A stretch of 63,889 bases of DNA, counting the filler, from Hyphochytrium catenoides (Eukaryota; Protista; Hyphochytriomycota): the NCBI GenBank assembly GCA_900088475.1. It is 7 parts of 7 records of this genome, joined end to end, with 100 filler letters (N's around TTAATTAATTAA, not from the genome) between each part and the next. Parts side by side here need not be neighbours in the genome. Positions count along the whole stretch, not along the records: positions 31,630 to 53,068 come from FLMG01001284.1; 6 more parts are not named here. The stretch is one strand, 5' to 3'. Below, one piece after another: positions 32,589-52,256 of this stretch. The first letter of the stretch is position 1, and every line of letters begins with the position of its first letter. The notes beneath the pieces are model-generated. The model did not search any database. It was given only the letters and a program-made list of their open reading frames with translations, and was not told the origin of the DNA. Made by a program: the position numbers and the translations under genes.

Positions 32589-33497
32589 ATGGAATTCGTG
32601 GTGCGAGTCAACAGTCTGGATGGCTCTCTTCCTCCTTCTCCTCCTTCCTCTGCCTCTCCTCAGTCTTCAATAGTGATTAGCGCTCCTCCTGCCGCGCCAA
32701 CAGCGGCGACACCTTCTCTTGCCCAGTCCGAAGTATTGAGAAATATCATTGCTAGGATCCTGATGCTCCCAAGAGAGATGATCAACGGCCATTGTCAGAC
32801 CATGAGCAGCCCCACGTCTAGCCAGTTTATTCACAATCTCCGATGCGTTAGGCCGACAAAGGTTCTCAAGCAAAATGCCTGCGTTATATGTATGGACAGC
32901 CTGTGCTCTAAGATCACAAGGTTGCCTTGTAAGCATGCCTTCCACAAGGCTTGCCTTGTCGAGTGGCTAAAGAACCATAATACCTGCCCAAGCTGCCGGC
33001 ATGAGCTGCCTAAAGAGCCACGACCCGTGGTGCAGATGCCACCGCTCTCTCTCCCTCTTGCACCTCTACCTACTCTCCCTATCACCGGTGCGCCAACAGT
33101 CCCTAGCCAGCCAGTGCCTCTCAACCCAGCAGGCACACTTCTCCCTATCCTCCCTCTGACCACCACCTCACCAAGTGGAAGAAGAATCAGAGCCGTAGTC
33201 ACTGCTAGGATTAGACGCGTACAGCCTGGAGACGCAGGAAGGACGCCTATTATTAGGATCAGGAGATTCTTTGTCCAGAATCCCAATGGACAGGGCGCCA
33301 CAGTCTCTCCTAATGCTGCTGTGCCACCCAGTGCACACTTCGTAGATGTTCCCGCCAATGTGGGACATGTTAGTCAGGCTCAAGCTGGAGCGCATCCTGA
33401 GGTGCGGACGACCGGAAGGAGACAGAGGGCGGAGATGGAGGAGGAGATGGAGAGAGTGATCAAGAAGCCCCGTGTGGAGGATGTCTCTCTGGCTTAG
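32589..33497 (+). CDS. RING-H2 finger protein (putative E3 ubiquitin ligase), intronless
   Basis: 302-aa ORF with CVIC...[26 protein letters not shown] (C3H2C3 pattern), Pro-rich flanks and a possible C-terminal NLS (KKPR). Confidence 0.9.
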
Positions 33498-39189: not shown

Positions 39190-40156
39190 ATGGCTCGTTC
39201 TTTCTTATCATCGTTGAGGGCAGCGACTGTCCTTCTCTCTTTCACTTCGCTTGCTCTCTTTCGCGAAAGTGAGGCGCAGTCATGCTCTAGCAGCTTGGAC
39301 TGCCCTAATCCTGAGCCTTGGAAGGACACCGTTGTCTCCTGTGGCTGTCCGGATGGTCTTCCTTCTACCACTTGCATCACGCCCACGGTGACTGGCGGCT
39401 TTATCACGTACGTTCTTCTATCTTCTCCAGCTCCTAGTACTTTCTTCTTCTCCGCCGCCCGTCCTCCATCCCCCATTCTCTCTACCTATCCTCTCCTTCA
39501 TCGCGTTACTTCTGTCATTATGGCTCCTCCCGCCCGCCAGCTTACCTTGGTTGTTGCCTCTCTTTTCTAGGGGTGGTGTCTGCTACATTATCACAGAGAC
39601 AGGCATCTCCTGTTCAGCCAAAGGAGGGAAGCGGGACAGCCCAACTGGACTGCAAGAAGACTGTCCGACGAAGGGACAAACCTGCATTGGACGTGGAGCG
39701 CTGGTTGGCGAGTGCGTAGAGAGCAAACTAGCAAATCCCTCTGCCACTCCTTCCCCTTCTCCTTCCTCTTCGTCGTCCTCGTCGCCGCGTCCCACAACCA
39801 GCAGGACCACCACCACTCTTAGGACTCCGACTACCTCTGGCTCCCCTTTCCTTACCACTACGGCAGTGCCAACCTCTGCTAATGATGAGACTGAAGCTCC
39901 CTCAGAAGACGACGACCCGCTGTTTCCTACCTCTCCGCAAAGACCGACCACAGATGTTCCTGTTACCATTGGAGACGACGGCATATCTACGGCTCCGGAC
40001 AGCGGCAAGGGAGACGCAAACGCGGATCCTACTACTGAGCCCAAAGCTACTTCTGCTCCTCCCGGCAGCGGGGCCTCCTCCACTTTTTCCTCTTCTCTTC
40101 TCATCTTTTCTTCGCTCATCGTCGGGACCCTTACCACGGTTCTGACTGCAGCTTGA
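39190..40156 (+). CDS. Secreted Cys-rich, Ser/Thr/Pro mucin-stalked, putatively GPI-anchored surface protein (2 exons)
   Basis: Signal-peptide-like MARSFLSSLRAATVLLSFTSLALFRESEA. Intron 39408-39570 (GTACGT...TTCTAG) joins the two ORFs in frame. A 10-Cys domain precedes an S/T/P-rich stalk and a hydrophobic end SGASSTFSSSLLIFSSLIVGTLTTVLTAA* with no cytosolic tail. Confidence 0.8.
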
Positions 40157-41366: not shown

Positions 41367-42445
41367 GAAGCGCATTCGTAGATGGTGAAAATTTGGACGC
41401 CCATTACTGCGGGAGAGCCGCCTGCAAGCGAGCTTGTGGTGAGCGCAAGTCCTAGGCCAGCAGAAGACACACAGAAAGAACACTGGAAGCCGTCACCCAC
41501 GGAGATTGCAGATTTTTCCAGATGAGCAGCAAAAAGATTAGAGAAGGAGGACTGACGCAGCTTCCCATCGGGCCAAAATCTTTGTCTGTTGAAGAAAGAG
41601 AAAACGGCTACCTCAGATCTAACCGCTCAGTCTATTTTCGTGACAGGGATAGCAAGCCTTTTTGTATGCCGGTAGCTAACTAGGTTATTTCCGGGTTCAT
41701 GGTACCATGTCATGTATCCGTTGCTGCTACTGCTAGACAGAGATAGAGACAGAGAGGGAGAGAGAGAGAGAGAGAGTTTTAATAGAGAGACAGAGTAACA
41801 GACAGAGAAGAACAAGAGGGTAACAGAGACACACTACCAGAGACAGAGAGAGAAAAGAGAAAAGAGAGAGAGAGAGACAGAGAGAGAGACACAGAGAGAG
41901 ACAGAGAGAGAGAGACAGAGAGAGAAAGGAGANNNNNNNNNNNNNNNNNNNNNNNNNNNNNNNNNNNNNNNNNNNNNNNNNNNNNNNNAGAGAAAGAGAG
42001 AAAGAGAGAGAGAGAAAGAGAGACCGCGGGGAGTCAGACCGATGTTAGTGTACGGAGGAAAGAGATACGAGGAGAGGTTGGTTGGAGTCAGAGGGCAACG
42101 GGAAGACCCAGCAGCGGTGGAGAAGGACGAAGGGGCAAGGGATAACTCACAGCGCCGGACACACGCGATCAGAAGAGAGAAGGAGGTGAAGGCCGTGGCG
42201 CAGCAGGAAGTGAAGCAAGCAGAAGAGCCCCTGTATCCTGGGTCAGAGCTGGCGAGCTATCGCTGACGTCCCGTCCACACCTAACCTCGAGAAGCAGAAG
42301 AGCCGTTGAGCACCAGAATGCAGGGATACTCTCGCCACTGAAGACAGAGTGGCCGAGCAAAAGAGAGAAAGAGAGAAAGAGAGACAGAGACAGAGGGGAG
42401 AGAGAGAGAGAGAGAGTTTTCTAAAGTCACAGCCAAAAGACAGCG

Positions 42446-45307
42446 ATGACATCAAAAGACACCGCCAACGGGACACCAAGAGCGACGCTGCTGAAACGAG
42501 ACAGTGCGAAGAGAGTGAGTATCGTGCAGTCTATTCTCCTCTACTTCTTCTCTTCTTGGAACTCCATTCATGTTCCCTTACGCCTTCTCCACTGACCTCT
42601 CCGGGCGTACATCCTGCTCTGCTAGTTCCTCTCTTTCTTTAATCTGGTTGGCGTTTCTTTCTCTCCCTCTCTTCTTGCCTGAGGTGCTTCAATCGCTCTT
42701 TCATCTAGTCTTTCAAGTTGTCGTCAGTGATTGTTACACTACCTCTCTTTCTCTCTCTTTTCTCTTGCCTCTCTGTTTCTTCTCTCTTCCTTCTCTAACA
42801 TGGTTGGACCCCATCTCTTCACTTTCTACTTCATCACTTTCCTCTCTCTCTCCCTTCTTTCGCTCCTCTGTCTGTCTGTCTCTCTTCCTCCCTCCCCCTC
42901 CCCTTTCCTCCCTTTCCTTCTCTTTTATCTCTCTCCTGCGTGCGCTTGTCTCCCCTCTTCCTTCTCCCCCCAATCGCCCTGTCTGTCTCTCTCTCTCTCT
43001 TTCTTTCTCTCTCCCCGTTGTGTCTCTCTCTCTTTCAGGTGGATTCTCTTCTCCAGCACCAGTTTGAGATCATTGATCGGTCAGGACAGGGAGAGATTGA
43101 TGCGCTCGACCTGCAGGATGGACTCCGAAAGTTGGGACTTCGCTTGTCCCTCGCTGAGACCACGGCGCTGTTGAACCGCATAGATAAGGATAAGAACGGG
43201 AAGCTGTCAATGGAAGATTTCCGGAGTTTGCACGAGGAGTTCATCCACCAGGTTTTTGAGAGCTTTGACACTGATAAGTCAGGGTACATTGACTCTGACG
43301 AGCTGCAGGTAGGGAGTCATGGGTTCTACGGCGTCGTCTCTTCTCGCTTTCTCAAAAGTCCCTCTCTTTCTCACCGTGCTGCCAGTCTGTCTCTTCTTGC
43401 TCTCTCTTCTTCTCATAACTTATTCGAGGTGCTCACTTCTCTAGATAACATAGCACACCTTATCTCTCTCCTTGTAGCCTCTGCAATTAGCGTGACGCCG
43501 CATGCTCTTTGGCTTCTTTCTCTCTGTGGAGCATCTCTTTGTGTGAGGCCATGAACATCGCAACCCCACCTTTTCCTTCCTTCGTGGTCTCTGACTTGCC
43601 TTCAATGGCTTCATCTCGCTCCACTTTTCTATCCTCGTTCTTCTCTGTCCATTGCTTCCCATGTTAACTCTTCTCTCTTCCCTCCTGATGACATTCTTTA
43701 TACCAGGTCGCGCTAAAGAAGATGGGAATTGCCGTCTCCCGCTCTGAGGCCCAGCGGATGATTGATGTTATTGACACAAAGAATGATAGTCAGCTCGATA
43801 TTTATGAGTTCAGAGATCTGTACATCCTTCTCAGATCGAAGATGAGCCAGAATAGGATTCAGCAGTTTCTATGGGATCCGGACGTGAGAGAGCTCCTCTC
43901 AGAGTGGATCAACTCTTCAAAAACGGTAGATATAGGAGAAGCAGGTCTCGCGGCGCCACTCCCTCCCTCGTCTCGTGCGTCGAAGAGGACAGAAGACTCC
44001 GCATCTCTTCGTATGATTGCAGGCATGGTCTCAGGCGTCATAGAAGCTCTTCTCCTCACACCTCTCGATGTCACCAAGACCCGTCTTCAACTGGACAGGC
44101 AAGGAAGGTACAGAGGGATGATCCATTGCGGAAAGGAGCTCTTTCTCTCGGAAGGTGTCAAAGGTCTATACAAGGGCTTCACCCCGTGGACAACGCACGT
44201 AGTTCTGAAGAATGGGACGCGCTATAGCTTCAACGCTATGTTTAAACGCCTTTTGTCAGACTCCAACGGCCAAGTAAATGGGACGAGAGAGTTTATTGCG
44301 GGAGGTCTTGCGGGTGTAAGTGAGGCATTCCTCATTGTGACCCCGTTTGAGGTCATCAAGACGAGAATGCAGGCAGAAGATAAGAAGGTTGGAGGAGAGA
44401 GAAAGTACCGCTCTTCTTTCTCGACTGTTACAGCGATTATGAGGAATGAAGGAGTGGCTGGCTTCTGGAAAGGTAAGCTGTGGGAAGGCGTGGGCCCATG
44501 GAGTTTCCTTTCATTTTGCCTTCTCCTTTCCCGACGTCCAGGTCATGCCACTCTCCCTCTCTTTTCCATTGTCTCTCTCTCCACTCCTCTTTCTCTTCTT
44601 TACTCATGCAATTTCTCTTATCACTATCAAACAATTTTTCCATCCTTGCTCACCTCGCTTGCATGGGCTTCACAGGCGTGACTCCTACGATGGCTCGTCA
44701 AGGGCTGAACCAAGCTTGCAGCTTCTGGGCTAACAATTATATCAAGAAGAATGTGTGGTCGCTGAAAGAGGGAGAATCCTTGCCAGTGTGGAAGAGTGCG
44801 CTCACAGGGATGATTGGCGCTGTTCCTGGTCCACTGATCAATAACCCAGCCGATGTGATCAAGAGCAGGTTCGGCTCTGCTTCTCTCTCTCTAACTTACT
44901 CTCCCTCTGCCTCAAGTATCTCGTTCTTAGGACCGCTCATCTAGCGCGTCATTTCTCTCTGACTTTCGGTAGAAAGTTTGTCTCTTCGTTTCTCTCGCCG
45001 ACGTCCGCCCCTTTCCTTGCTTGCTCACCTATGTCATCCAACACCTCTTCTCTCTCTCCTTCTCTCTCCCTCTTCGCTGCCTTTGTTATCGCGAACTTCT
45101 CTACGTAGACTGATGGCGCAAGAGAAGGGAGGGGCGGAAGCCAAGTACCGTGGCTTTGGGCATGCGTTCTCGCTTATCGTCAAGGAGGAGGGAGTGGGCG
45201 CTCTTTATAAGGGAATTGTCCCCAGGCTGATGAGGCTCTGTCCCTCTTATGGCATCCAATGGATGGTGATAGATCAGTTCGTTGCAGTCTTTGGGAAGAA
45301 ACAGTGA
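42446..45307 (+). CDS. Mitochondrial carrier (SLC25/MCF) with four N-terminal EF-hands and an SFC1/citrate-carrier-type transport domain; 5 exons
   Basis: Exon 1 MTSKDTANGTPRATLLKRDSAKR|GTGAGT. EF loops DRSGQGEIDALD, DKDKNGKLSMED, DTDKSGYIDSDE, DTKNDSQLDIYE. Three Px[DE]xx[KR] signatures: PLDVTKTR, PFEVIKTR, PADVIKSR. Ends VFGKKQ*. Confidence 0.92.

Positions 45308-47565: not shown

Positions 47566-52256
<4,691 letters not shown>

Follow-up and report, generated by a model that had tools for sequence, protein, structure and literature searches.

Gene structure

The stretch of DNA analysed here, referred to as the window, is 63,889 nucleotides (nt) long, filler included, and was taken from the genome of Hyphochytrium catenoides (GCA_900088475.1). 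A gene of five exons was found in it at positions 42446-45307 on the + strand, encoding a predicted protein in which a domain of four EF-hands is fused through a linker to a complete mitochondrial carrier of the SLC25 family, and an SFC1-type identity of the carrier domain is strongly supported by the phylogenetic and sequence comparisons. All the introns are of the GT-AG type, the phases are compatible, and the coding sequence of 1497 nt comprises 498 codons with no stop or frameshift. The introns range from 203 to 524 nt and are CT-rich. The parts of the gene are as follows.

42446-42514, + strand: exon 1, 23 codons, phase 0, with the start codon and the basic-Ser motif LLKRDSAKR
42515-43038, + strand: intron 1, 524 nt, CT-rich, GT..AG, stops in all frames
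43039-43308, + strand: exon 2, 90 codons, with EF-hand 1 (EF1), EF2, a short single EF2-EF3 helix and the EF3 loop
43309-43706, + strand: intron 2, GT..AG
43707-44472, + strand: exon 3, 255 codons plus 1 nt, with the EF3 exit helix, EF-hand 4 (EF4), the linker, carrier repeat 1 and most of repeat 2
44473-44675, + strand: intron 3, GT..AG
44676-44868, + strand: exon 4, with helix 4 (ARQGLNQ), helix 5 and the third carrier signature NPADVIKS(R)
44869-45108, + strand: intron 4, GT..AG
45109-45307, + strand: exon 5, with the remainder of repeat 3, helix 6 (PRLMRLCPSYG) and the TGA stop at 45305-45307

The Pfam EF-hand families matched exon 2 with E-values of 6e-18 to 1e-10 (EF-hand_6/7/1 with 6e-18 to 1e-14), while Mito_carr matched exon 3 (2e-35, in two stretches, beside a weak EF-hand match), exon 4 (5e-5) and exon 5 (3e-13). 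The window's protein entered the searches and trees as single exons, and the folds were made from orthologues; the junctions were checked by homology, the five exon translations being compared separately with full-length orthologues. Exon 1 and the four splice junctions were found to be collinear with the full-length oomycete orthologues, including the 501-residue P0121 of Pythium insidiosum, with no gap or insert at any junction. The start codon of exon 1 is the earliest in frame downstream of a stop, the exon ends at a GTGAGT donor, and its TLLKRDSAKR|VDSLL aligns to the orthologue N-terminus LVRRxSRxTVDxLL. No C-terminal extension beyond the carrier was detected in exon 5, and the protein ends about 10 residues past helix 6.

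The same fusion was observed in L001, an unrelated eukaryotic contig (Logan ERR4674102), where one open reading frame (ORF) of 361 codons spans EF-hands 1-4, the linker and repeats 1-2 and is followed by one small intron and the remaining carrier. A real five-exon gene for an EF-hand-fused mitochondrial carrier is confirmed by these predicted exons and their agreement with the orthologues. The original prediction had claimed the fusion from exon 3, whose coordinates proved exact: the exon is uninterrupted, and because its single open frame covers EF-hand 4, the linker and repeats 1-2, the fusion is not an artefact of the gene model. It had also implied six coding pieces, a number that was corrected to five. 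The motifs that it quoted (KTVDIGE, VIEA..LTPLDVTKTRLQLD, TPWTTHVVLK, IVTPFEVIK, RQGLNQ, P.DVIKSRLMAQ and PRLMRLCP) were all recovered, and the SCaMC marks APLDRLK, KIAPE and GIIPY, all of which are present in a dog SCaMC, are absent from the window protein, as it had stated.

Long (AG)n microsatellites lie directly upstream of the start codon, at 41735-41925 and 42362-42416, and the introns of the gene carry (CT)n tracts. These tracts give rise to numerous spurious 'SLSLSL' ORFs on both strands.

Phylogenetic placement of the carrier domain

The carrier domain qualifies as Mito_carr (SLC25, PF00153) by its three repeats, in which the PX[DE]XX[KR] signatures PLDVTKTR, TPFEVIKTR and NPADVIKS|R are all intact. 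In word searches with exon 3, the best named relatives were plant proteins annotated as 'mitochondrial succinate-fumarate transporter 1', with 40-45% identity and E-values of about 1e-49 to 1e-44, and carriers of stramenopiles were nearer still, at 48-63% identity. The identity between dog SCaMC1 and the window carrier was 23%.

Evolutionary trees were constructed with FastTree (140 rows) and with IQ-TREE under LG+C20+F+G4 (63 rows), the window being represented in both by the 165 residues of exon 3. The clades were named through Sfc1p of Lachancea, the 'tricarboxylate transporter' of Ramicandelaber, a protein with a KEGG SLC25A23/24/25/41 label (P0241) and dog SLC25A24. The UniRef entry for the last (P0307, 746 residues) is a gene-model fusion in which two SCaMC paralogues, the first partial and the second full, stand head to tail; these two parts were used separately.

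In the IQ-TREE phylogeny, the window carrier was placed in a clade of 15 rows (support 100/99) that holds all the EF-hand-fused proteins, and this clade lies inside a larger one of 37 rows (100/100), together with the plant and algal SFC1 proteins and the plain SFC proteins of oomycetes, Hondaea and Balamuthia. Fungal Sfc1p is sister to this SFC1 clade (95/85), and the CTP/CIC-like carriers follow next, outside it (97/88). The FastTree phylogeny agrees on the SFC1 placement. SCaMC is distant from the window carrier in the trees, and a protist EF-hand carrier, P0230, joins the SCaMC group. The oomycetes hold both a plain SFC and an EF-fused paralogue, so the duplication is old.

The residues of the putative substrate cavity agree with the trees. 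In an alignment with the named Sfc1p, plant SFC1 and CTP-like rows, the window protein carries K-x3-R on helix 2, R-Q-x2-N-Q on helix 4 and R-x2-R on helix 6, which is the SFC-type set; the K, R, Q and N positions of these helices are ones that we take to line the substrate site. The CTP-like rows have an extra Arg on helix 4 that the window protein lacks, and SCaMC has E..K on helix 2, G-I on helix 4 (GIIPYAG) and N..K on helix 6 at the equivalent positions. From the trees and these residues, a carrier domain of SFC1 type, outside CTP/CIC and far from the ATP-Mg/Pi carriers (APC), is strongly supported. The SFC1-like, not SCaMC-like, carrier of the original prediction is therefore upheld, both by the 100/100 clade and by the identities of 40-45% to plant SFC1 against 23% to dog SCaMC1, and no grouping with SCaMC/APC was observed in the trees.

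EF-hand domain and linker

Four EF-hand loops were found in the window protein, as previously noted, and two of the four satisfy the strict PROSITE pattern PS00018. They are followed in exon 3 by a conserved linker and by the first carrier repeat.

43075-43110, + strand: EF-hand 1 loop, DRSGQGEIDALD, failing PS00018 at position 5 (Q) only
43183-43218, + strand: EF-hand 2 loop, DKDKNGKLSMED, matching PS00018
43267-43302, + strand: EF-hand 3 loop, DTDKSGYIDSDE, matching PS00018
43773-43808, + strand: EF-hand 4 loop, DTKNDSQLDIYE, degenerate, failing PS00018 at positions 3 and 6
43866-43958, + strand: linker, FLWDPDVRELLSEW..VDIGE..P, conserved, in exon 3
from about 43998, + strand: carrier repeat 1, in exon 3

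Ca2+ binding is predicted for EF2 and EF3, whose loops are canonical. P0003 keeps EF1 and EF2 canonical, and P0295 is the sole family member checked that has no canonical loop. With EF1 alone canonical in the oomycete orthologues and EF2 and EF3 in the window protein, different lineages retain different sites. The four-EF scaffold and the linker are kept across deep divergence, at 43-47% identity.

The resemblance of this domain to the regulatory domain of the ATP-Mg/Pi carriers was assessed at several levels. The helix joining EF2 and EF3 has 16 residues and was modelled as a single continuous helix, and a single EF2-EF3 helix is likewise described for APC regulatory domains in PMC6283063. 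Comparison by hhalign with two APC N-domains gave a probability of 97-98% across all four EF-hands, a resemblance that is not specific, since ALG-2, CDPK and calmodulin have similar scores. In a profile search of the PDB with the family N-domain, the SCaMC1 regulatory domain was retrieved at 5.5e-19 and ALG-2 at 4e-21 to 5e-19, calmodulin being about three orders of magnitude worse than SCaMC1. A first model of the N-domain, made for Pythium from an alignment of 14 rows, was of low quality, with a predicted local distance difference test score (pLDDT) of 63.8, and gave generic calmodulin matches in Foldseek, with SCaMC1 at rank 47. For EF1-4, though not for the linker, a second model (P0002, 35 rows) was of good quality; by VIA-align, the APC1 regulatory domain was among the top matches to this predicted fold (Z 10.4, root-mean-square deviation 8.3 Å, 134 residues aligned), against Z 10.5 for calmodulin, and with such a tie the fold comparison cannot decide the origin of the sensor. 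A language-model feature search returned SCaMC-like clusters only, which reflects the architecture and is uninformative on the carrier subfamily.

Among the N-terminal segments of the family, the linker is the best conserved: over the EF4 exit helix and linker (WDPD..W..S..GE.GL..P), the entropy is 0.55-0.60 bits, as compared with 1.2-1.5 bits for the EF loops. Such strong conservation is in keeping with a separate role for the linker. By BLASTP, EF4, the linker and the carrier are collinear with dog SCaMC1, and DVRELLSEW..VDIGE pairs with DIEEIIRFW..IDIGD after an insert of 13 residues. The window linker scored 36 against the SCaMC1 linker, where shuffled sequences gave a mean of 19.3 ± 4.0 (p ~0.003), and the linkers of the orthologues gave p-values of 0.002 to 0.12 in the same test. 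Four of the five hydrophobic helix contacts of human APC1 (I159, I162, I163 and W166) are conserved in kind in the window protein, where V, L, L and W stand at these places. By comparison with the residues given in PMC6283063, it also has the R-D pair of the 'ERD clasp' known from APC and, in the EF2-EF3 helix, the H-E; in oomycetes, the R-D pair after EF4 is replaced by K-Y. Taken together, an APC-type sensor, or descent from one, is plausible and not established, the sequence comparisons pointing weakly to moderately in this direction. The ATP-Mg/Pi-type sensor of the original prediction thus holds as to the collinear layout and the linker similarity, but the profile and fold searches do not separate it from calmodulin or ALG-2.

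A further N-terminal motif, [RK]-R-x-S-R/A (42485-42514 in the window), was observed just ahead of EF-hand 1. It is kept family-wide (P0121, P0288, P0295, P0002 and others), and R7, S10 and R11 are nearly invariant in the family alignment. Speculatively, the R-R/K-x-S motif could be a phosphorylation site for a basophilic kinase.

Distribution of the architecture

The EF-hand and SFC1 architecture is not unique to this genome and is conserved in oomycetes and unnamed protists. About 33 full-length orthologues with EF-hands and Mito_carr, ranging from 471 to 523 residues, were retrieved by word searches, all of them from oomycetes, namely Pythium, Globisporangium, Phytophthora, Nothophytophthora, Peronospora, Hyaloperonospora, Bremia, Plasmopara, Peronosclerospora, Lagenidium, Aphanomyces, Saprolegnia and Thraustotheca. 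Matches also came from three fragments of metagenome or Sequence Read Archive origin (P0002, P0003 and P0010), and in an exhaustive search of representatives, P0121 was the one full-length representative spanning EF4 through the carrier. No apicomplexan orthologue was found in these searches, nor any protein from the window's own organism or a near relative; none of the window's ORFs has an exact match in the protein collection, and a search against Rfam gave no match. The oomycete proteins, such as KAJ0401692.1 of Pythium insidiosum (501 residues), match the architecture all the way from the RRxS motif at the N-terminus to the C-terminal end, and share the linker WDPD..W..S..GE.GL..P and the 100/99 clade, and the identity of the Pythium orthologue to the window protein is 53% in exon 3 and 68% in exon 4. 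They differ in that EF1 is their only canonical loop and K-Y follows EF4, whereas the window protein has canonical EF2 and EF3 loops and R-D.

The orthologues are deposited as 'EF-hand domain-containing protein', 'hypothetical protein' or, automatically, 'SLC25 citrate transporter 1' (SLC25A1). Whether the architecture had already been described, a point raised beforehand, was answered in part by these entries, which exist under automatic names, and no description of an EF-hand and SFC carrier was found in the open-access full-text literature. The available text of a 2018 APC review names no further class of EF-hand carriers and contains no match for succinate or dicarboxylate.

Other domain combinations were also encountered. 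P0186 (538 residues) has the reversed architecture by Pfam, with three carrier repeats followed by C-terminal EF-hands, and forms a long, unplaced tree branch; fusions of EF-hands with carriers seem to have arisen more than twice. P0123 from Spirogloea muscicola (556 residues) carries an endonuclease/exonuclease/phosphatase domain ahead of an SFC-clade carrier, and is either a real fusion or the product of merged adjacent genes.

Comparison with known carriers and proposed function

To our knowledge, the Ca2+-regulated mitochondrial carriers characterised so far fall into only two classes, ATP-Mg/Pi carriers and aspartate/glutamate carriers (AGC). The ATP-Mg/Pi carriers (SCaMC/APC: SLC25A23-25, Sal1 and AtAPC1-3) likewise have four N-terminal EF-hands with a short single EF2-EF3 helix, to which a counterpart was detected in the window protein by Pfam and hhalign, and an amphipathic helix after EF4, for which a counterpart is predicted there, that ends in DIG[DE] and is followed by the carrier, the whole aligning collinearly. 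The window protein differs from them in the subfamily of its carrier, in the 13-residue insert after EF4 and in the loss of the F165 contact. The aspartate/glutamate carriers (aralar/citrin, SLC25A12/13) are also mitochondrial carriers with EF-hands, and sense Ca2+ at the outer face. Their N-domain, which dimerises, has eight EF-hands, and they possess a C-terminal helix, whereas the window protein has four EF-hands only and no C-terminal extension, and it does not belong to this class. The SFC1 proteins (yeast Sfc1/Acr1 and AtSFC1) belong to the same clade and have K-x3-R on helix 2, R-[QN]-x2-N-Q on helix 4 and PR..R on helix 6 in common with the window protein. Known SFC1 proteins are about 310 residues long and have no regulatory domain; by comparison, the window protein adds about 190 residues of EF-hands and linker and stands on a separate sister branch.

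The gene product would be a three-part carrier of the mitochondrial inner membrane with about 498 residues, made up of the four-EF-hand domain, the linker and the complete SFC1-clade carrier; its mitochondrial location is inferred. Since SLC25 carriers have both termini in the intermembrane space, it is cytosolic Ca2+ that the EF-hands would sense. The linker, which ends in VDIGE, is predicted to form an amphipathic helix bearing V, L, L and W on the same face, and the putative cavity carries the basic residues typical of di-/tricarboxylate carriers. Succinate/fumarate and/or citrate/isocitrate would most probably be counter-exchanged under the control of a Ca2+ switch, and the probable switch would be a 'locking pin' of the linker helix, like that proposed for the ATP-Mg/Pi carriers (PMC6283063). 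Ca2+-loaded EF-hands would hold the linker helix, and Ca2+-free EF-hands would release it and leave the carrier blocked. Yeast Sfc1 carries succinate/fumarate, and AtSFC1 mainly citrate/isocitrate (PMC7408384). A Ca2+-regulated di/tricarboxylate exchanger is the reading that we consider fairly probable, and we infer its substrate, Ca2+ binding, gating direction and mechanism.

Several observations weigh against this interpretation. The gene model was predicted from the DNA sequence and the collinearity of orthologues, and the substrate is not readable from sequence. The EF-fused clade is a separate sister of the characterised SFC1 proteins and is not nested within them. EF4 is degenerate and EF1 atypical in the window protein, and the oomycete orthologues keep EF1 alone canonical; the Ca2+ dependence may therefore be weak or lineage-variable. 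The raphidophytes Heterosigma and Fibrocapsa and a gene model from Albugo fall inside the EF-fused clade and have no EF-hands, so the carrier is able to function in the absence of the sensor; these members suggest that the EF-hands were lost or, in the case of Albugo, perhaps that the model is truncated. The fifth helix contact of APC1, F165, is E in the window protein. The linker helix was predicted at a pLDDT of 50-59 only, and its docking is thus a putative one.

The first alternative to be weighed, which we regard as unlikely, is a constitutive SFC-type exchanger with a structural EF-hand module, largely insensitive to Ca2+ and used to dimerise, to target the protein or to bind partners, like most of the EF-hands of citrin and aralar. 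The EF loops, the least conserved part of the N-domain, decay lineage by lineage, with EF4 degenerate everywhere and EF1 the one canonical loop of the oomycetes, and the EF-less relatives inside the clade point the same way; but all members checked except P0295 keep at least one canonical loop, the window protein has two and a near-canonical third, and the conservation of the four-EF scaffold and linker over deep divergence does not favour such a module.

A Ca2+-regulated carrier for another substrate, for example another oxo- or dicarboxylate, with the EF-fused clade as a separate SFC branch, appears quite improbable. The sister position of the clade would allow it, as would the clade-specific residues of helix 2 (TPWT.HVV.KNGTR) and helix 4 (RQGLNQACSFW), and the preferred substrate differs even between AtSFC1 and yeast Sfc1; against this, the basic cavity residues common to SFC1 and CTP are all retained, and an identity of 40-45% to plant SFC1 is typical within a subfamily.

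It is very improbable that an EF-hand gene and a neighbouring carrier gene were read as one, or that the locus is a pseudogene. No public RNA run was listed for the stretch, and the assembly is a draft with N gaps nearby, but the open frame of exon 3, the in-phase junctions that match the orthologues residue for residue, the single ORF of L001 and the 498 intact codons all contradict such an artefact. A divergent ATP-Mg/Pi carrier with a merely SFC-like carrier domain is hardly credible: the architecture, the language-model clusters and the match of the N-domain to the SCaMC1 regulatory domain are those of SCaMC, but this identity of the carrier domain is already contradicted by a phylogeny in which it lies far from dog SCaMC1, P0241 and P0230, and likewise by the 23% identity, by R-Q in place of G-I on helix 4 and by the missing APLDRLK, KIAPE and GIIPY.

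For the Ca2+-regulated di/tricarboxylate exchanger, a wider proposal can be put forward, which we hold tentatively. It may represent a third class of Ca2+-regulated carriers, assembled independently of the other two by the joining of an APC-like EF-hand and locking-pin module to an SFC1-type exchanger, and present in oomycetes and in further protists, most of them unsampled. In this class, cytosolic Ca2+ would gate the flux of succinate, fumarate and citrate without the entry of Ca2+ into the matrix. If this is true, the EF-hand 'front end' would be a portable regulatory module for SLC25 carriers, placed here on a di/tricarboxylate exchanger, and would provide a direct route from Ca2+ signalling to the intermediates of the tricarboxylic acid and glyoxylate cycles and to citrate export. 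The oomycetes include major pathogens of crops and fish in which zoospore release, encystment and germination are Ca2+-driven. Since the family is conserved across the oomycetes, the proposal is testable in tractable organisms, and the lineage-specific retention of EF-hands would serve as a natural experiment on which sites matter.

Other features in the window

Three further coding features were observed around the carrier gene.

32589-33497, + strand: ORF of 302 codons with a RING-H2 zinc finger
39551-40156, + strand: ORF of 201 codons, Ser/Thr/Pro-rich, with a hydrophobic C-terminus
about 48100-52000, + strand: multi-exon Ser/Thr protein kinase gene, downstream of the carrier gene

The RING-H2 finger of the first ORF was detected as zf-RING_2 (E 4e-12), and the ORF has no exact match in the protein collection. 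The second ORF gave no match in the Pfam search, and by its composition its predicted product looks like a mucin or a surface protein anchored by glycosylphosphatidylinositol. The kinase gene carries Pkinase on two exons (e.g., 48630-48779 and 49156-49326, with Pfam E-values of 4e-8 and 8e-13) and appears SNF1/AMPK-like by eye; assembly gaps (N runs) lie inside it near 48.2-48.3 kb and 50.8 kb.

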